From Octopus sinensis (Eukaryota): DNA of 64,000 nt. The DNA lies in assembly GCF_006345805.1 (NCBI RefSeq), contig NC_042999.1, positions 6,448,001-6,512,000 of the forward strand, given 5' to 3'. The position numbers were made by a program, and so were the translations under genes. Position 1 is the first letter of the stretch, and each line of letters opens with the position of its first letter. The notes beneath the pieces were generated by a model that saw only the letters and a list, made by a program, of their open reading frames with translations, did no database searches and was not told the DNA's origin. Below, in pieces: positions 4,685 through 63,220 of the stretch.

Positions 4685-6297
4685 TGTCAAAAGTTGTCGA
4701 GTTATATCGAAGGAATGCCGACAAGACTTTCATCACGAAATACAAGAAGAATTTTTACCAAAAAAATCGTTCTAGTACTCACAGGGTATCCACCTATTTT
4801 ATTGGTAAAAGAAGATGTGACGGTCGTCTTTGGTACAGCAACATCTTTGACACCTAAAAGAACCGGCATGTCTGTCTTGGAGACGGGAACCTGTTTAAAG
4901 GATGGCGGAGTATATAAGAGAGACAGAATGGTTGTAGTTGGTGATAGATTCGGTTACAGGAATGTCGAAGATGACATTGGGGTTTAATTTAAACAATTAA
5001 ATTAAGGAGAAGGAGAGAAGCCTTTAAAGAAACTGATTACCACGTGTTGGAGTGTTTATAGTTGTCTTCCTCTAACACAGGAGAGCTCACAGTCAGTGCG
5101 CGCACCTGTCTAATTAAAACCGTAATTAAAAACAGAATTTACGACGAAGTTGGCAATAAAAGGGGAAATGATGAAAAAGAAATGAGTAAATAATTAAAAA
5201 GGAGACATCTACACTCTAAGAAAGTGTGTGGTGGGGTTGTTTGGGTCTGAAACACCAGAGCAGATTTTTAAAAAAATTATTCTACTCATGTGGTGTTTTA
5301 AGCTAATTACGAATATCAATTATTTTTCGAGAAATTAAAGCAATGCTTCGATATTGATGCACGACTTCCCTTCAGGCAAGACTTTCACCCGTCCTCCCAC
5401 CAAAAAAACCCCACCCTTTATAAAAGCTACGGGGAATACGAATCTGCAAAAAAATTGGTAAAAATCGGCATTTTTAAATTACCACCTCCTCCATCCTCAT
5501 TTCCTTCACTTTTTTAATTTTTGTCAGAAATTTTTTTTTTCAAAATATGCGGAAAAATATGGTGATTATGATTCTGAAAAAAATTTCCAAAAATTTCTGT
5601 AAAAATTTTTTTCAGAATTTTTTTTTTTATTAATATGCGAAAAAATACGGACATCATGATTCGGACAAAAATTTCAGAACATCTCTGTACTTACGGTTTT
5701 AGGGTTAGTGTTGGGGAAAAAAGTCAAAATTGAAGAAGTTGAGAAGAAAGTGTTTGTGTGGGGGGATTTCACAATGCCGATTTTTGGCAATTTTCCGGAA
5801 CCCCCGTATCCGAAAACGGGGATTTTTTTGAAAAAAAAAAAAAAAAAATTTAATAAACAAATTTGGGAGAAAATGGGGGTGGGGGACGGGTGGAAGTCTT
5901 TCCAACTTCATTCCCTTACACAAGCTTCCCCCATGTCAAAGATAAAGAGACTAAGCTGAAAAAGATAAATGATGTCGTCACCTCACACTTTGTAGACCAA
6001 CACCGAAGGACTGCTTTGATTAATAATAAAAAAATACTCCATACCTATTTGGGTGGCAGAAATTCCCTCCAATTCATCCTGCAGTCTTTCGCTTAAAAAA
6101 AAATGGTTGTAGTTGTGACATGAAACATTACAGTTGTGGAGAGAAGTTAACTAAAATCAAAAAGAACCCCCAACCTTGAGTAAAAACGGTATCTCCTTTC
6201 CTAGAACTTGTCAAGATATCCCAGTGGTTCTCACCCACTTTTTAACCCAAGGTGGAATCTCAGAACCTATGGTGTTTTAAAAGTCCTATTATTTTTT

Positions 6298-6650
6298 TCA
6301 TCATCATTATCATCATCATTTAACGTCAGTTTTCCATGCTAGCATGGGTTGGACGGTTCGACCGGGGTCTGGGAAGCCAGGAGGCTGCACCAGGCTCCAG
6401 TCTGATCTGGCAGTGTTTCTACAGCTGGATGCCCTTCCTAACGCCAACCACTCCGAGAGTGTAGTAGGTGCTTTTTACGTGCCATGGGTACAGGTGCCAG
6501 GGGAGGCTGGCAGCGGCCACGATCGGTTGGTGATTTTTACATGCCACCGACACGGAATCCAGTCAAGGCGGTTCTGGCAACGCCCACGTTCGGATCGTGC
6601 ATTTTACGTGTCACCGGCACAGGTATCACAACTACAATTTCCATTTGATT
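6298..6650 (-). mobile_element. Family A RTE-related 3'-end repeat
   Basis: (CAT)n tail at 6298-6318 followed by the shared core. Confidence 0.8.
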
Positions 6651-8372: not shown

Positions 8373-8392
8373 TTATATATACATACACACAT

Positions 8393-8404
<12 letters not shown>

Positions 8405-8489
<85 letters not shown>

Positions 8490-8525
8490 ATATATATATA
8501 TATGTATGTATGTATGTATATGTAC
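8405..8525. repeat. (TA)n/(TATG)n microsatellite
   Basis: Seen directly. Confidence 0.95.
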
Positions 8526-8726
8526 GTATGCGTGTGTGTCTTTGTGTCTCTGTTTGTCCCCTACCACCGCTTGACAATCGTTACTTAGCGGTTCGGCAAA
8601 AGCCACCGACAGAATAAGTACTCGCATTTATTTTCAAGTACTGGCGTCGGTTCGTTTGACTAAACCCTTCAAATCGATGCCCCAGCACGGTCGCACTCTA
8701 AAGACTGAGGCAAGTAAAAGACCATA

Positions 8727-8958
8727 GAGAGCTGGCAGACTCGTCAGCACGACGGGCGAAATGCTATGCGGTATTTCGTCTGCCGCTACGTTCTGAGTTC
8801 AAATTCCGCTGAGGTCGACTTTGCCTTTCATCCTTTCGGGGTCGATAAATTAAGTACCAGTTACGCACTGAGGATCGATATAATCGACTTAATCCTTTTG
8901 TCTGTCCTTGTTTGTCCCCTCTGTGTTTAGCCCCTTGTGGGTAGTAAAGAAATAGGTA
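8727..8958 (+). mobile_element. tRNA-headed SINE family B
   Basis: GAGCTGGCAGA..CGT.AGC head, GTTCAAATTCCG B box, GTCGACTTTGCCTTTCATCCTTTCGGGGTCGATAAATTAAGTACCAG core; more than 10 copies in the window. Confidence 0.85.
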
Positions 8959-8994
8959 CTATATATGTACATATATAGACGGTGCCTTTTTATT

Positions 8995-9049
8995 CCGGAA
9001 GTAGTTTATTTTGTTTCCGGGTACGAAACCGAACCGGAAGTGACGTCAC
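8995..9049 (+). promoter_or_regulatory. Promoter of the THAP gene: ETS motifs and ETS-CRE composite
   Basis: CCGGAAGT at 8995-9002; CCGGAAGTGACGTCAC at 9034-9049, about 275 nt upstream of the ATG. Confidence 0.65.
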
Positions 9050-9323
9050 TACTTCTCTGTTCCACGCTTTTCAGGAGGAATCAAAACAAAACTTTATCAC
9101 AATTAAAGCCAAGATCACAGATTATTTATAAAGATCGGGTTTTACGGCGATGATGATGATAGTTCCTTTCTGAATATACAACCGATGCTTTAGAAATGTA
9201 CGAAGCCAACCAGAAAACGAAGGAGGTGGAAAATAAAGGAGAAAAAGTTTGATGCAACAACAACAAGCATCGTCAAGATTAATTAAAGTGTTGTTGGATT
9301 GATTAGATCCGGATCGATACCAA

Positions 9324-12300
9324 ATGGCTGGAAATCAAACACCTGGGGTGACGACGGCTTCGACCTGTATAACAACAACAACAACAACGACCACATCGAC
9401 GTCATCGATGTCTGTATCGGGTGGAAAGGGTTCGATCAGCTCAGAGACCCCTCCTCCAGTGGCTGCTGTGGCCGTGACCACAATTAAGCCATCGTCGGAT
9501 GAGAACAAAACGAAGCTGCTTCAGTTGTTCATCTCCAAGCAAAAAGGACAGAATGCTTTCTGTTGTGTCCCCATGTGTAAGAATTCTTCCAAGAAAAACC
9601 CCAATTTGCATTTCCACACCTTTCCAAAAGAAGACAAGATAATCACTTCTGGTGCTCGATGTGGAGAAAATCTTCGCAAAGTTTGGCTTTGTCAAATCCA
9701 CCGCAAAAAATTCAAGTAAGTTAATTATTTGGAAAGATCCAGGTACCCCAACCCCTTATTATAGATAAACAAAACTTTAAAATTAGATTTTTTTTTGCAA
9801 AGAAATATACTTTACAATTCAGTATTATTAATTAGTGACTGGATTAATTAAAATCGTTTAGTTTTGATTAGATTTATAGATCCCGGATCGAATGTGTAAT
9901 ATTTACTACTCCTTATTGTTGCAGAAAATTATTATCAAGGCTAGACAATCGTTGGCACGTCGGATTAAGTGCTTTGCTGCACTTCTTCCGGCTCTTTACG
10001 TTCTGAGATCAACTTTGCCTTTCATCCTTTTGGGGGTCGATAAAATAAGGACCAGTTGAGTTCTGGGTTCGATGCAATCAACTTGGCCCCTCCCCCGCCT
10101 TGTGCCAAAAAATCATCATCAACATCATTATTATTATTATTATTACGTTAAAGTGGGGAAAAACCCTGTTTTATGTTGAAATACAATATTGTTTAATGTT
10201 AATCTCATGTCCTGACTCCGAATATTAACTTATTCTTGCCCTTTCTCGGATTCCCTTCTTTTTATTAGTTTCCGATTTCAAGTTGACTTCATGTAAACCG
10301 AGTGCAGAGAAGTAGAATTGTGTTGCACAGGGTTTCGATCCCGCCTTGAAACTACTTCTCTTACTTCACTCAGAACACGAGGAAGACATGTCTGTCAGAT
10401 CCCTTACATTATACAGTATATACTGTAGTAGGGAGATAATCGATTACTTGGTCAGAAAAAGTAGTTGTGTACTTTCTGAATCAGTTATGGATTTTTCCGA
10501 TGTCGGCGCTAGATCGATCGTGTGTGACACATACACCTATTATTTCCCCGTGTCTTGAATGTTGTCTCACGGGGAAAAGTCTTTCTTAGTCTAAATCTGT
10601 ATATTTCACAGTCTGCCTTGCATACATCAGTCTTTCATACTACACACACACACACACACACACATGTATACATTTAAGTTCTGTTTGGAGCAAGGTCCTG
10701 TGTCTATGGCTTTTCCTGAGAATTGGAAAAGATGTCTTCCTGGGGTTAAAATGTAGTAATATATATTTCTTTATTGCCCACAAGGGGCTAAACATAGAGG
10801 GGACAAACAAGGACAGACAAAGGGATTAAGTCGATTACATCAACCCCAGTGCGTAACTGGTATTTATTTAATCGACCCCGAAAGGATGAAAGGCAAAGTC
10901 AACCTTGGAGGAATTTGAACTCAGAACGTAATGGCAAACGAAATACCTATTTCTTTACTATCTACAAGGGGCTAAACACAGAAGGGACAGACAAAGGGAT
11001 TAAGTCGATTATATCGACCTCAGTGCGTAACTGGTACTTATTTGATCGAATCCGAAAGGACGAAAGGCAAAGTCGACCTCGGCGGAATTTGAACTCAGCA
11101 CGTAGCGACAGATGAAATACCGCTAAGCATTTCGCCCAGCGTGCTAACGTTTCTGCCAGCTCGCCACCCTTAAAAGGTAGTAAGGGTTCTAGAACGGCCA
11201 CCTTACATTGGCAAATAAACTTTTCCAGTACAGTATCGTTACTATTTAAATCTCATTTAGAGATTTTAAAACTGTTTTTTCTCCTGATACATAATGTTTT
11301 GCATAACCCTTTTGATATCAACCCACCTGAAACTGCCCCCGGTTCTATGATATAAGCTTCTTAACCTTTCATCAGAATGTCTTGTTAATTTAGATTCCAA
11401 ACACTGGCCCCTTTTGTCTTTGTAGCAGTTGACTATAATGCTTTTGCTCCACCAGTCGTTGAGTATGACTTCTTCGTGTCCAACCTGATCAAGTATGAGG
11501 GATTATTAGGTTGTATTCTACGCCATCAGATACTTGAAGCATCACCACAGTAATTTCTGACCGACCAGGGGCTTAACCTGTCCTCATATCCTTAACTGCT
11601 TTGCCTATCATCATATTGCTGAGTAAACTGGAGCAAGGTGAAATAAAGTGTCTTGCATAGGTGCCACCAGTAATTGAACTTACAACCTTATGCTCATGGG
11701 TCAAATGTCCTAACAATTAAGTCACATACCTTTACAGTCATTTTATATAAGTGTGTAGAAATTTGATACAAGAGAAATTCTAATTCTTGTATGTCTACCA
11801 TATTTCCTGATTGCCAGTACCGCCTGACAGGCCCCCATGCCAGTGGCATGTAAAAGCACCCACTACACTCTCGGAGTGGTTGGCGTTAGGAAGGGCATCC
11901 AGCCATAGAAACTCTGCCAGATCAAGATTGGAGCCTGGTGCAGCCATCTGGTTCGCCAGCCCTCAGTCAAAATCGTTCAACCCATTCTAGCATGGAAAGC
12001 GGACGTTAAACGATGATGATGATGATGTAGTAAAAATATATTTCCAAAGATTGCTCTTATGTGATGGCTAACGCTCAAAAAGGTTTATTTTTTTCCTTTT
12101 GCAATACATTTATTTTGATTTTTTTTTCAGAATTACGAAAGATACTCTTGTGTGTAGCGAACATTTCAACAATGAAGATTACAAGCCAAGAACCAGAAGG
12201 AACAAGCTTTATGGTCAACCTGGTCATTCTTTGCGGCTTTATGATAATGCTTATCCAACATTATTTAGCTGGAACAACTGGGGCAGAAGATCGTCGGGAA

Positions 12301-13391
12301 CAGAGGAATGTCAAATGGAGACGAATAATAATTGCAACTTTGAACATACAGAGGTACCGGTCATTGATATGATGCACAATTATAGCCTTCCGAGTGGAAT
12401 CGACGATGCTGGGACGATAATTCAGGATTTAAGGAGACAACTTGACCAAGCAAAAATCGACAGTTTTCGATTTTCCTTAGAACGGTACAGTGCCGATGAT
12501 GCTTTAGTGGAACATTACACTGGCTTTGATTCTTATGGAATTTTAACCAAATTCTTTCATACTCTTGAAGAGTGGGAACATGCTTCGATTATGCGGTCCA
12601 AGATTCGTGTGAGTAGCAGAACTACCGAGGGGTTGCAGCCGGTCAGCTGTGAGAAGGGGCTTCAACTCATTGACCAACTAGTTTTGTACCAAATGTATAT
12701 ATATCGAGGACTGTCCGTCATGGATTTAGCAGCAAGATTTCTGGTGCCGGTTGATACCGTTTGGGACATAATTATTACCTGGGCAGATATTTTGTTCTTT
12801 TTTCTTGGTGTTATGACAGTTTGGCCGTCGAAAGAAGAAGTGAGAGAAAGTCTGTTGCCGAGTAGCCTGAATGGTTTCAAACTAAGTGACGCTCGAGTTT
12901 GTCTTGAATGTGTGGAATTAAGATCAGAAACATCTGCGTCCCATGTTTTGAAAAGTCTGCCATATAAAGAATATAAATCAACTTACACTCACAAGGGTCT
13001 CATAGCTATTATCCCAAATGGCACCGTGATATTTGTCTCTCCTCTTATGTCTCATTCTCTGTCTGACCAAGATTTAACGATAAAATCTGGCGTTTTAGAT
13101 CTCTGTGAAAAAGGTGACGCTATAGTTGTGGACAGTGATTTTAAGATAAACAAATTGTGTTCCGAGCGTGGAATCAAAGTGTACCATTCCGATTATAAAC
13201 TGTGGGAAACATCAGAAATAACAGAAGATATGACAGTCTTCTGGTCACCCATCAAAAATGTGATGAGAAAGATCCTTGAAAATCAACTTTTTCTCTGTGT
13301 TCCATCGAATATCAAAGAAACGGTCTCACAAATGTGGGCCGTTGCTTGTCTGCTTTGCAATTTCCAAATACAACAACCGAAAACAACGTAA
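9324..13391 (+). CDS. THAP domain / HTH / Harbinger-ISL2EU-like DDE-fold protein, probable domesticated transposase, 2 exons, 550 aa
   Basis: join(9324-9715,12131-13391), AA|gtaag...ttttcag|A, 1653 nt in frame. The intron splits the THAP C2CH motif (CCVPMC...FHTFP...W...LVCSEHF). Downstream HTH_Tnp_4-like DQLVLYQMYIYRGLSVMDLAARFLV and DDE_Tnp_4-like YKEYKSTYTHKGLIAIIPNGTVIFVS...SD...SGVLDLCEKGDAIVVDSDF...VACLLCNFQ. No stops or frameshifts. Confidence 0.9.
10765..11168 (-). mobile_element. SINE family B, dimeric copy, in the THAP gene intron
   Basis: Reverse complement of the family B core, twice. Confidence 0.8.
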
Positions 13392-13520
13392 CAATTGCTA
13401 ATTAAACTGTTAATTACATTTGGAATTTTAATGAATTATTTTTATTTTATAACAAAATATTAAAAAAAAATCACTCATTATTTCTTCGTTTAATGTTGGG
13501 TCTTTTATTGTGGAATTGTG

Positions 13521-13838
13521 AAGGTGCATGGCTCAGTGGTTAGAGTGTTGGCTTATGAGCTCAAATCCCGGACCGGGCTGTGTGTTGTGTTCTTGAGCAA
13601 GACACTCTATTTCACATTGCTCCAGTTCACTCAGCTGTAGAAATGAGTTGTGATGCAACTGGTGCCAAGCTGTATCAGCCTTTGCCTTTCCCTTGGATAA
13701 CAATGATGGCGTGTAGAGGGGAGGTTGACATGCATGGGCGACTGCTGATCTTCCATAACCTTGCCTGGACTTGTGCCTGGGAGGGTAACTTTCTAGGTGC
13801 AATCCCATGGTCAGTCATGACCAAAGGGGGTCTCAGAT
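13521..13838 (+). mobile_element. tRNA-headed SINE family D
   Basis: GCATGGCTCAGTGGTTAGAG head, TTGAGCAAGACAC core; matches 51080-51422 and 63221-63622. Confidence 0.8.
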
Positions 13839-17834: not shown

Positions 17835-17970
17835 AAGACACAATTATTAAATTTAGCTTTACAAATATACAAAATAGTTTTTGGGGATAACAATGCAATT
17901 TTATAAAAAAAAAAAAGATTTATTGGGATATTTGCCCTTCTATCTACAACCTTCAGTTTGTGGCAAAGAA

Positions 17971-42552
<24,582 letters not shown>

Positions 42553-45411: not shown

Positions 45412-45714
45412 ATATGTGTGTGTGTATATGTATATATATCATCATCATCATCATCATCGTTTAACGTCCGCTTTCCATGCTGGCATGAGTTGGACGGTTC
45501 AACTGGGGTCTGGCAAGCCCGAAGGCTGCACCAGGCCAGTCAGATCTGGTAGTGTTTCTACAGCTGGATGCCCTTCCTAACGCCAACCACTCCGAGAGTG
45601 TAGTGGGTGATTTTATGTGCCACCGACACAGGTGCCAGATGAGGCTGGCAGACGGCCACGCTCGGATGGTGTTTTCTTATGTGCCACATGTTGCTCAAAA
45701 TATCTGGTAGTGTC

Positions 45715-49743: not shown

Positions 49744-49796
<53 letters not shown>

Positions 49797-50310
49797 TTAG
49801 CGTCCGTTTTCCATGCTAGCATGGGTTGGACGGTTCTACTGGGGTCTGTGAAGCCAGAAGGCTTCATCAGGCCCAGTCAAATCTGGCAGTGTTTCTACGG
49901 CTGGATGCCCTTCCTAATGCCAACCACTCCGTGAGTGTAGTGGGTGCTTTTTACGTGCCACCCGCACTGGTGCCAGACAGAGCTGGCAAACGGCCAAGAA
50001 CGGATGGTGCTTTTTATGTGCCACCGGCACGAGGGCCAGGCGAGGCTGGCAACGGACACGAAACGGGGCGGCGCTGGCAACGGTCGCGAAACGGAAAGTT
50101 CTCTTACATGCCACCGGCACTGGTAACACATCTGCAATTTCCATTGATCGATTTCCATTCTGATCCTCACTTGCCTCAACACGTTTTCACAAGTAGAGTT
50201 ATAAATACATATATATATATTCTTTTATTTGTTGCAGTCATTTGATTGCGGCCATGCTGGAGCACCGCCTTTAGTCGAGGAAATCGATCCCATATATATA
50301 CATACACACA

Positions 50311-56499: not shown

Positions 56500-57058
56500 A
56501 GGTGCAGGAGTGGCTGTGTGGTAAGTAGCTTGCTTACCAACCACATGGTTTCGGGTTCATTCCCACTGCATGGCACCATGGGCAAGTGTCTTCTACCATA
56601 GCCTCGGGTCAACCAAAGCCTTGTGAGTGGATTTGGTAGACGGAAACTAAAAACAGCCCGTCGTATATATGTATGTGTGTCTGTGTTTGCCCCCAACCAC
56701 ATGGTTTCTGGTTCATTCCCACTGTATGGCACCATGGGCAAGTGTCTTCTACCATAGCCTCGGGTCAACCAAAGCCTTGTGAGTGGATTTGGTAGATGGA
56801 AACTAAAAACAGCCCATCGTATATATGTATGTGTGTCTGTGTATATGTTTGTGTGTCTGTGTTTGCCCCCCCCCCCAACATCGCTTGACAACTGATGCTG
56901 GTGTGTTTATGTCCCAATAACTTAGTGGTTGGACAAAAGAGACCGATAGAATAAGTACTAGGCTTCCAAAGAATAAGTCCTGGGGTCGATTCGTTCGACT
57001 AAAGGTGGTGCTCCAGCATGGCCACATTCAAATGACTGAAACAAGTAAAAGAGATAAA
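56500..57058 (+). mobile_element. SINE family C with an internal tandem duplication of about 155 bp
   Basis: Head/core segment occurs at about 56539-56690 and 56694-56845. Confidence 0.85.
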
Positions 57059-57714: not shown

Positions 57715-58116
57715 ACTCTTTTACTCTTTTACTTGTTTCAGTCATTTGACTGCGGCCATGCTGGAGCACCGCCTTTAGTCGAGCAAATCGACCCTGGGAC
57801 TTATTCTTTTGTAAGCCCAGTACTTATTCTATCGTTCTCTTTTGCCGAACCGCTAAGTAACGGGGACGTAAACACACCAGCATCGGTTGTCAAGCAATGC
57901 TAGGGGGACAAACACAGACACACAAACACACACACGCATATACATATATATACATATATACGACGGGCTTCTTTCAGTTTCCGTCTACTAAATCTACTCA
58001 CAAGGCATTGGTCGGCCCGGGGCTATAGCAGAAGACACTTGCCCAAGATGCCACGCAGTGGGACTGAACCCGGAACCATGTGGTTGGTAAGCAAGCTACT
58101 TACCACACAGCCACTC
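57715..58116 (-). mobile_element. SINE family C
   Basis: Near full-length reverse copy. Confidence 0.88.
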
Positions 58117-62278: not shown

Positions 62279-63220
62279 CTTGCTGAGGCTGGTTCAGTTA
62301 CCTTCAAAGACTTCGTCCAATGTAGTGAGAGTTGTTATTTAATTCCAGTCAACCTTGATGAAGAGAAATACAATCAAAGGTTTTTCAAAATATACCTAGG
62401 AGTACATTAATCAATGTATTGTTTCCATGAGTAGGGTGTGCTTTGAGGGAGATCTAGTTGATATTTCTACCATAGGGCCTCCTCATTGTTTGGTTACCTG
62501 AAGTAAATTATCCTGGTGGACTCCTTTTATTTTTTTATTCACAGACCCAAGGAGCAAACAAGATTTATCCTGTGTTTTGAGGGTAACAGAGTGAGCTGTT
62601 TGAGTTTAGTGTATGTGTGTGTGTGTATGTAATTAACTTTAATGATCTTTTAAAAAGACAGATCTGTACATGCAATGGACAGGTGATCAAACATAAATGT
62701 AGAAGAAAGGGACATGTCCCCAAAAGTCAAAGGTTTGTCATCATCATCATCATCATCATTTAATGTCCGCTTTCCATGCTAGCATGGGTTGGACGATTTG
62801 ACTGAGGTCTGGCGACCCAGACTCCAATCTTATCTGGCAGAGTTTCTACAACTGGATGCCTTCCTAACGCCAACCACTCTGAGAGTGTAGTGGGTGCTTT
62901 TACGTGCCACCAGCACGGGGCCAGTCAGGTGGCACTGGCAATGGCCAACCCAAAATGGTGCTTTTTATGTGCCACCTGCACAGGAGCTAGTCTGGTGACA
63001 CTGGCAATGACCTCACTCGAATGTTTCATGTGCCACCAGCACGTCATGGATTTGAACCCCTAACTCATTGATTAATGGTTGTTAAGGATTTATTCAGTTT
63101 TTTTTTTCATTTTTAGATAAGGTTAGTCCACATTGCTTCATAAAGAGCATAAGTCTGGTTCCCCTGTTTCTCTGGCACATACATCTTCCTCACCTGGACA
63201 GGACGCTGGTCGTCACAAAA

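Follow-up and report, generated by a model that had tools for sequence, protein, structure and literature searches.

A coleoid THAP-DDE gene at an Octopus sinensis locus, probably a domesticated ISL2EU-type transposase with a lost catalytic triad

The gene and its conserved locus

The stretch of Octopus sinensis DNA analysed here (assembly GCF_006345805.1, contig NC_042999.1, positions 6,448,001 to 6,512,000 of the forward strand, 64,000 nucleotides; hereafter the window) carries on its plus strand, at positions 9324-13391, a two-exon gene whose predicted protein joins a THAP zinc finger, a helix-turn-helix (HTH) and an RNase H-like domain derived from a DDE transposase. The gene is a domesticated transposase of the PHIS superfamily, apparently undescribed before, and its closest parent type is most probably ISL2EU, i.e., a PIF/Harbinger-related group of DNA transposons. 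It is present once in the genome, is kept at the same place in other octopods and in a cuttlefish, is spliced in cuttlefish, is under purifying selection and has lost the catalytic triad.

Coding exon 1 (9324..9715, 392 nt) encodes residues 1-130 together with 2 nt of codon 131, that is, an S/T-rich low-complexity N-terminus followed by the first half of the THAP finger, while coding exon 2 (12131..13391, 1261 nt) encodes residues 131-550 and ends in TAA at 13389-13391. Between them lies a phase-2 GT-AG intron of 2415 nt (9716..12130), with the donor GT at 9716-9717 (GTAAGT), the acceptor AG at 12129-12130 preceded by a T-rich tract, and interspersed repeats in its interior. An in-frame stop (9300-9302) stands just 5' of the ATG at 9324, and a start reading 'MA(G/E/D)' is common to all orthologues. 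The spliced exons amount to 1653 nt, an uninterrupted frame of 550 codons and the closing TAA, and the product is 100% identical to the 550-residue O. sinensis record XP_029633586.1 (LOC115209356), the sole annotation of which is 'uncharacterized protein'. The spliced open reading frame (ORF) without lesions that had been read from the letters of the window (hereafter the original prediction) thus agrees exactly with the public record. Its placement of the intron inside the zinc finger is equally accurate: of the Pfam THAP model, exon 1 encodes positions 1-40 and exon 2 positions 51-87, the intron falling between 40 and 51. The stop-to-stop frame of exon 2 is not a product of chance, because it extends over 439 codons and the other frames within 9000-13800 reach at most 138 residues. 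At the DNA level exon 2 is 95% identical to O. bimaculoides, and the flanks and intron are 81-88% identical.

The same prediction had placed an ETS-CRE promoter motif ahead of the gene. This is borne out in part, by elements shared across species: a TCCGGAT-like element lies 12-18 nt 5' of the ATG (window 9290-9323 compared with the upstream regions in L015, L007, L026 and L008), and ETS-like ACTTCCG elements occur upstream of the gene in Argonauta and the decapodiforms. Their role as a promoter is less secure, since cuttlefish transcripts begin at least 195 nt 5' of the ATG and the elements may therefore belong to the 5' untranslated region.

Orthologues were identified in O. bimaculoides (XP_014767474.1), O. 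vulgaris and Argonauta hians (76% identity) and, among the decapodiforms, in Acanthosepion (Sepia) pharaonis and two further sources (59-61% identity). In Argonauta and O. bimaculoides, with both of which the window is collinear, the gene is flanked by a divergently oriented PDCD2_C gene and a convergently oriented MCM5 gene, and a divergent PDCD2_C gene likewise precedes it in Sepia pharaonis. A syntenic orthologue next to MCM5, which had been proposed as a check, is thus found in two octopods, and the PDCD2-like neighbour is shared with Sepia as well. The 3' exons of MCM5, the synteny anchor in octopods, occupy 17970..22333 on the minus strand of the window, with Pfam matches to MCM5_C at 19675-20040(-) and MCM_lid at 21173-21400(-). 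The probable first coding exon of the PDCD2-like neighbour lies at 4705..4953, also on the minus strand, where a tblastn match of 44% over 59 residues to the beginning of the Sepia PDCD2_C gene (L026) was obtained; the window ORF 4705-4953(-) itself has no Pfam match. MCM5 is not located within 61 kb downstream of the gene in Sepia, and neither MCM5 nor PDCD2 exons were found within 10 kb of it in another decapodiform contig (L008).

The phase-2 GT-AG intron interrupts the same codon in five genomes, namely O. sinensis, O. bimaculoides (2047 nt), Argonauta (1698 nt), decapodiform L008 (9082 nt) and Sepia (L026, approximately 8.8 kb). The same acceptor site is present in a 90% identical sequence, L018, which was considered as an Octopus transcript and rejected as such, being a genomic contig of another octopod. 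Removal of the intron is observed directly in cuttlefish: two transcriptome contigs map onto the locus of Sepia pharaonis in two blocks, 9800-10360 and 19163-20681, with the 8.8-kb intron spliced out at the junction corresponding to that of the octopus gene, and encode an uninterrupted ORF of 569 residues. Splicing is seen in a third decapodiform transcript too, in which an A8 run carries a shift of one base. The public Sepia pharaonis model P0016 (CAE1138293.1, 754 residues) fuses the gene with membrane-protein exons 44-61 kb downstream; the transcripts back the 569-residue product and not this 754-residue model (L026:10001-81520).

Protein domains and the altered catalytic triad

The THAP C2CH zinc finger comprises residues 80-176 (9561..12266, split into 9561-9715 and 12131-12266) and matches the Pfam model with 52.6 bits. 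In the alignment with human THAP1 (2ko0), C80, C85, the C-x2-H pair and the FP, W and F positions are kept. The C-terminal end of the domain reads AYPTLF (residues 169-174), where THAP proteins usually have AVPTIF, and an insertion of about 10 residues relative to THAP1 is specific to the cephalopod family. An AlphaFold2 model of the protein, built on 48 sequences, reached a mean predicted local distance difference test (pLDDT) score of 74, with 230 residues at 90 or above, and the finger is modelled with a pLDDT of approximately 90-95.

The finger is followed by the motif MHNYSLPS (residues 212-219; 12372..12395), which is invariant within the cephalopod family, and then by a long helix at residues 221-243 (12399..12467), predicted from the AlphaFold2 secondary structure. 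The place of the motif in the alignment is occupied by [DE]HxY in 18 of 38 related transposases. In THAP proteins, Asp/Glu-His-X-Tyr is the consensus of the HCF-1-binding motif (HBM), which adjoins a coiled coil (PMC13631171). The form invariant in the cephalopod family, M-H-N/S-Y, replaces the first acidic HBM residue with Met and is therefore a non-canonical HBM. By analogy with the THAP-protein layout described in PMC13631171, helix 221-243 may form a coiled coil or mediate dimerisation. Among the relatives, the canonical [DE]HxY was seen between the THAP finger and the helical region in P0039, P0040, P0043-P0045, P0047, P0052 and others. The occurrence of an HCF-1-type motif in roughly half of the ISL2EU-type transposases compared suggests that the elements themselves may engage this host cofactor.

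Farther downstream, the putative transposase-derived HTH (residues 308-353; 12660..12797) is recognised by HTH_Tnp_4 with 19.1 bits and is modelled as three helices, 310-323, 327-334 and 338-359, at a pLDDT of about 90. The C-terminal RNase H-like domain, derived from DDE_Tnp_4, spans residues 390-541 (12906..13361) and scores 55.4 bits. The three-domain layout of the original prediction is thus confirmed by Pfam for THAP and DDE_Tnp_4, while HTH_Tnp_4 stays below threshold.

The residues at the three triad positions are E390 (codon GAA, 12906-12908), D465 (GAC, 13131-13133) and K506 (AAA, 13254-13256). In MAFFT alignments with relatives of at least 330 residues, the same columns hold D-D-E in 71 of the 125 relatives, and the reference relatives bear the canonical IIDCTE, ADRGF and RIHVER motifs. 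The triad is hence not restored by proper alignment, and its assignment by eye as E, a retained D and K was exact. The triad is E-D-K in both O. sinensis and O. bimaculoides, E-N-K in Argonauta, E-D-D in Sepia and one other decapodiform, E-N-D in a further decapodiform and E-E-E in a cuttlefish paralogue. Only the first-position replacement of D by E is common to all family members, while positions 2 and 3 drift; therefore, catalysis is not what selection conserves. The DDE_Tnp_4 score has fallen to 28-57 bits in the cephalopod family, compared with approximately 130 bits in triad-intact relatives. Judged by these residues, the catalytic triad is dead.

The fold itself appears to be retained. 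In the AlphaFold2 model, E390 is on strand 385-396, D465 ends strand 461-465 and K506 lies in helix 496-514, i.e., at the canonical places of a DDE fold (strand 1, the end of strand 4 and the helix), so that the RNase H fold is recovered by structure prediction with the triad residues where they are usually found. A Foldseek search against the PDB returned retroviral integrase cores, the ISCth4 and Mos1 transposases, Metnase and the THAP2 domain, with modest E-values of about 1e-3.

Copy number, selection and phylogeny

ISL2EU elements carry terminal inverted repeats (TIRs) and a 5'-AT-3' target-site duplication (PMC4482050), and their second ORF encodes a YqaJ exonuclease domain (PMC4482050, PMC9179366). 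In six-frame searches of the 2.72-Gb genome with exon 1, exon 2 and the paralogue as queries, we obtained a single full match to the gene. The next-best matches were 35-40% identical over 120-180 residues and mostly contained stop codons; there are thus no near-identical copies. No inverted repeat brackets the gene, in agreement with the absence of TIRs noted from the sequence: the long pairs join an upstream interspersed repeat (8729-8961) with copies in the intron (10757-11162). A long microsatellite of the (TA)n/(CA)n type upstream of the gene (8374-8553) yields many spurious inverted-repeat pairs. A tblastn search with the YqaJ ORF of ISL2EU gave no match in the window below E = 1. Among the relatives, P0009 adjoins a YqaJ ORF, which is the ISL2EU layout of PMC4482050. 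A still-mobile or recently dead transposon is ruled out by the single copy, the missing TIRs and YqaJ ORF, and the synteny.

The sole YqaJ match in the genome, at C16:4445791-4446228 (L027:1348-1977, minus strand), belongs to LOC115220466 (P0220), a multi-exon gene on another chromosome with 50-55% identity in bivalves, gastropods, echinoderms and hemichordates and only 28% identity to an ISL2EU YqaJ ORF. Possibly it is a long-established host gene that descends from a virus or a transposon. We considered it as a co-domesticated partner by analogy with HARBI1/NAIF1 and ALP1/ALP2; being unlinked, widely conserved and only 28% identical, it gives that idea no support. Elsewhere in the genome, DDE_Tnp_4 matches of 96-105 bits in frames of 311-373 residues without stops were seen at C6:89536901-89537365, C25:5669812-5670327 and C8456:116945-117394, which may be intact Harbinger-type transposases or domesticated copies, e.g., HARBI1-like.

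The ratio of nonsynonymous to synonymous substitution rates (dN/dS) was estimated by the Nei-Gojobori method (NG86) on a codon alignment with bootstrap. Between O. sinensis and O. bimaculoides it was 0.063 (dS 0.24, 95% bootstrap interval 0.036-0.104), between Octopus and Argonauta 0.11-0.14, and near 0.08 within the set of three decapodiform sequences, with no bootstrap replicate above 0.22. Values of 0.06-0.14, far from 1, reveal purifying selection. By region, the THAP finger is the most conserved part (0.02-0.04); the motif-helix segment gives 0.00-0.08, the HTH 0.02-0.06 and the DDE-derived part 0.06-0.15. Faster evolution is seen in the S/T-rich N-terminus and in the linker.

The gene has 3572 relatives at E<=1e-3, and the named top ones, proteins found in multiple species of teleosts, sea stars and sea spiders, are also its closest named outgroups. 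An IQ-TREE phylogeny that includes 58 relatives unites all seven coleoid sequences with full support (SH-aLRT 100, a Shimodaira-Hasegawa-like approximate likelihood ratio test) in a clade on a long stem of 0.91, and in this clade octopods and decapodiforms are grouped reciprocally. The paralogue P0008 (537 residues, 41-44% identical, triad E-E-E, THAP 58.7 bits) is sister to the octopod and decapodiform orthologues (SH-aLRT 95). It is expressed in cuttlefish, as seen from transcript contigs L009-L011 (SRR8281680, SRR7369732 and SRR8281684). We rejected P0008 as an orthologue from Nautilus or another mollusc, as it comes from one and the same sequencing run, SRR8281684, as P0021, the orthologue from cuttlefish. 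No counterpart of P0008 was found in the O. sinensis genome, where its best match is the 550-residue gene itself, thus P0008 is an older paralogue that Octopus lacks. Because all members share the first-position change from D to E, the capture and inactivation are older than the duplication and than the divergence of octopods from decapodiforms, dated in published time trees to a few hundred million years ago. No orthologue from a non-cephalopod mollusc was present among the protein relatives found, the genomes of Nautilus and of other molluscs being outside that search.

Several sea-star proteins of the THAP-DDE_Tnp_4 type have altered triads, namely P0085 from Asterias amurensis and A. rubens, P0063 from Patiria miniata and P0099, which read D-N-K, E-H-E and E-A-A. 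The two Asterias species share P0085 at 90% identity or more. These proteins could be independent ISL2EU-type domestications in echinoderms.

The remaining observations concern repeats in the window. At least two families of short interspersed repeats (with lengths near 150 and 95 nt) have many copies in it, and are present also in the intron and around the Argonauta orthologue. Copies were recorded at 11870-12027, 6298-6457, 45438-45596, 49764-49931, 62738-62883, 23561-23620 and other positions, and also at 32926-33022, 22707-22797, 57961-58057, 56567-56819 and 19402-19497. Near the left end, the plus-strand frame 780-1418 (212 residues) and a partly duplicated one, 1336-1587 (83 residues), are retroelement-like (…LRWYGHVARMDE…). 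Neither has a Pfam match at E<=0.01, and they are probably a decayed tail of a long interspersed nuclear element.

Origin, possible function and relation to known systems

We propose that an ISL2EU-type (PIF/Harbinger-related) transposase became a host gene whose product is catalytically dead and probably acts as a DNA-binding or chromatin regulator, a reading to which we assign a probability of nearly 0.9. The catalytically dead, host-recruited ISL2EU/Harbinger transposase of the original prediction is supported by the copy number, the absent TIRs, the triad, the dN/dS values, the splicing and the synteny. The ISL2EU origin and the domestication of the gene are its firmest component, and we consider them highly probable; that the protein works as a sequence-specific DNA-binding regulator, given this origin, is a mechanism we only moderately favour from the domains that it contains.

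Under this proposal, the transposase would have been captured before octopods and decapodiforms diverged, with one duplication preceding that split. The transposon ends and the YqaJ ORF would have been lost, and the THAP finger is today interrupted by an intron. Selection would then have retained the THAP finger, MHNYSLPS with the long helix, the HTH and the whole RNase H-like fold. The finger, perhaps helped by the HTH, may bind specific DNA sites, whereas the long helix and the inactive RNase H-like domain could serve self-association or the docking of partners, and the protein would act as a regulator of transcription or chromatin and not as a nuclease.

Several points weigh against this proposal or narrow it. 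We infer DNA binding, dimerisation, partner recruitment and a regulatory role from domain identity, and the HTH_Tnp_4 match of 19.1 bits is below the Pfam gathering cut-off of 27. With the acidic first residue gone, HCF-1 binding via MHNY is doubtful and is offered as a hypothesis only. The all-acidic E-D-D of decapodiforms may allow residual metal binding in that lineage. Synonymous divergence between octopods and decapodiforms is saturated, and for Octopus itself, the case for expression and splicing is made by the public 550-residue record together with the cuttlefish transcripts. Finally, the age is a lower bound, the genomes of Nautilus, Vampyroteuthis and non-cephalopod molluscs lying outside the comparison.

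Of the alternatives, the one that survives best, although we consider it improbable, is that the dead transposase, kept either by the host or by the element itself, represses transposons by binding ISL2EU ends through its THAP finger and blocking the mobilisation of related elements. Truncated P-element proteins repress P elements and offer a model for such a role, it is precisely the parent's modules for binding DNA that have been kept, and decayed ISL2EU-like fragments persist in the Octopus genome. However, these relics are only 35-40% identical and mostly broken, which leaves little to repress, and the strong constraint has nonetheless persisted across the octopod-decapodiform split. The invariant motif of the family and the insertion in the THAP loop suggest new targets, but none of these points is conclusive.

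It is even less probable that the protein is still an enzyme whose RNase H-like domain cuts or joins DNA using a non-canonical acidic set, e.g., E390 and D465 with another residue. The purifying selection on the RNase H-like part (dN/dS 0.06-0.15) would fit such an activity, as would the Glu that always occupies the first position and the E-D-D and E-E-E sets of the decapodiforms and the paralogue. Conserved catalysis is nevertheless unlikely because positions 2 (D/N/E) and 3 (K/D/E) vary between orthologues; in Argonauta only one of the three triad residues is acidic, Octopus has Lys at the third, and the DDE_Tnp_4 score has dropped from approximately 130 to 28-57 bits. An old immobile copy or a gene-prediction artefact that stayed open by chance, for which the bare annotation as an 'uncharacterized protein' might speak, has a negligible probability given an ORF open in at least seven species at a syntenic locus, conserved splice sites, dN/dS far below 1, spliced cuttlefish mRNAs, and the stops carried by the other ISL2EU-like fragments of the Octopus genome.

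The domesticated, catalytically dead ISL2EU transposase that we favour can be compared with several known systems. ISL2EU transposases have the same order of THAP, HTH and DDE_Tnp_4 domains as the octopus gene, and their teleost and echinoderm members are 25-36% identical to its product over nearly the full length. Unlike them, the octopus gene is without the triad, TIRs, AT target-site duplication and YqaJ ORF, and it is single-copy, syntenic, intron-containing and under purifying selection. The Arabidopsis protein ALP1 is a PIF/Harbinger-derived, catalytically inactive and Polycomb-associated protein without a THAP finger and with a co-domesticated Myb-like partner. The analogy lies in a transposase of the same superfamily that was kept by its host after the loss of catalytic residues, probably as a scaffold for binding proteins or DNA. 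The two differ in kingdom and parent lineage, Harbinger in ALP1 and ISL2EU here, and in the THAP finger of the octopus protein; no partner gene for the octopus THAP-DDE gene was found at the locus.

HARBI1, which retains its DDE triad, is without a THAP finger, whereas the octopus gene is THAP-bearing and ISL2EU-derived. Both HARBI1 of vertebrates and DPLG of Drosophila are domesticated PIF/Harbinger transposases (PMC5753468, PMC9710019). They resemble the octopus gene in being ancient, single-copy, syntenic and transposase-derived within the same superfamily. The DPLGs, however, stem from PIF proper and were often co-domesticated with a Myb-like gene, in contrast to the ISL2EU ancestry of the coleoid gene.

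The N-terminal C2CH finger followed by a short H-x-Y motif and a helix recalls THAP1 and THAP11/Ronin, i.e., the layout of the THAP factors that recruit HCF-1. THAP9 is likewise a THAP-bearing gene of transposase origin, reported to be catalytically active, whereas the triad of the octopus protein is gone. From the cellular THAP proteins and THAP9 the octopus protein also differs in its C-terminal two thirds, which are RNase H-like of the PHIS and not of the P-element type, and in its non-canonical HBM. A metazoan survey counted 25 THAP genes in O. bimaculoides, mostly with BTB/POZ in Octopus, and did not single out this gene (PMC10027918). In the literature searched, we found no published description of the gene or of any ISL2EU-derived host gene, which is weak evidence for novelty. 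We tentatively hypothesize, as a possibility with somewhat less than even odds, that this is the first documented host gene derived from an ISL2EU transposase, a coleoid-wide factor without counterpart among the non-cephalopod proteins compared, older together with its duplication than the octopod-decapodiform split, in which a THAP finger and an HCF-1-type motif (MHNYSLPS) have been rewired to new targets or partners for lineage-specific regulation.

Domesticated transposases have recurrently yielded new regulators, such as RAG1, HARBI1, ALP1 and THAP9, and well-supported cases from molluscs are few. The coleoid gene provides a clean example: a datable single capture with a conserved intron and neighbourhood, in which the triad decays in a different way in each lineage under continued constraint on the fold and on the modules that would bind DNA. 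For cephalopod biology, it is a lineage-restricted candidate factor of transcription or chromatin.

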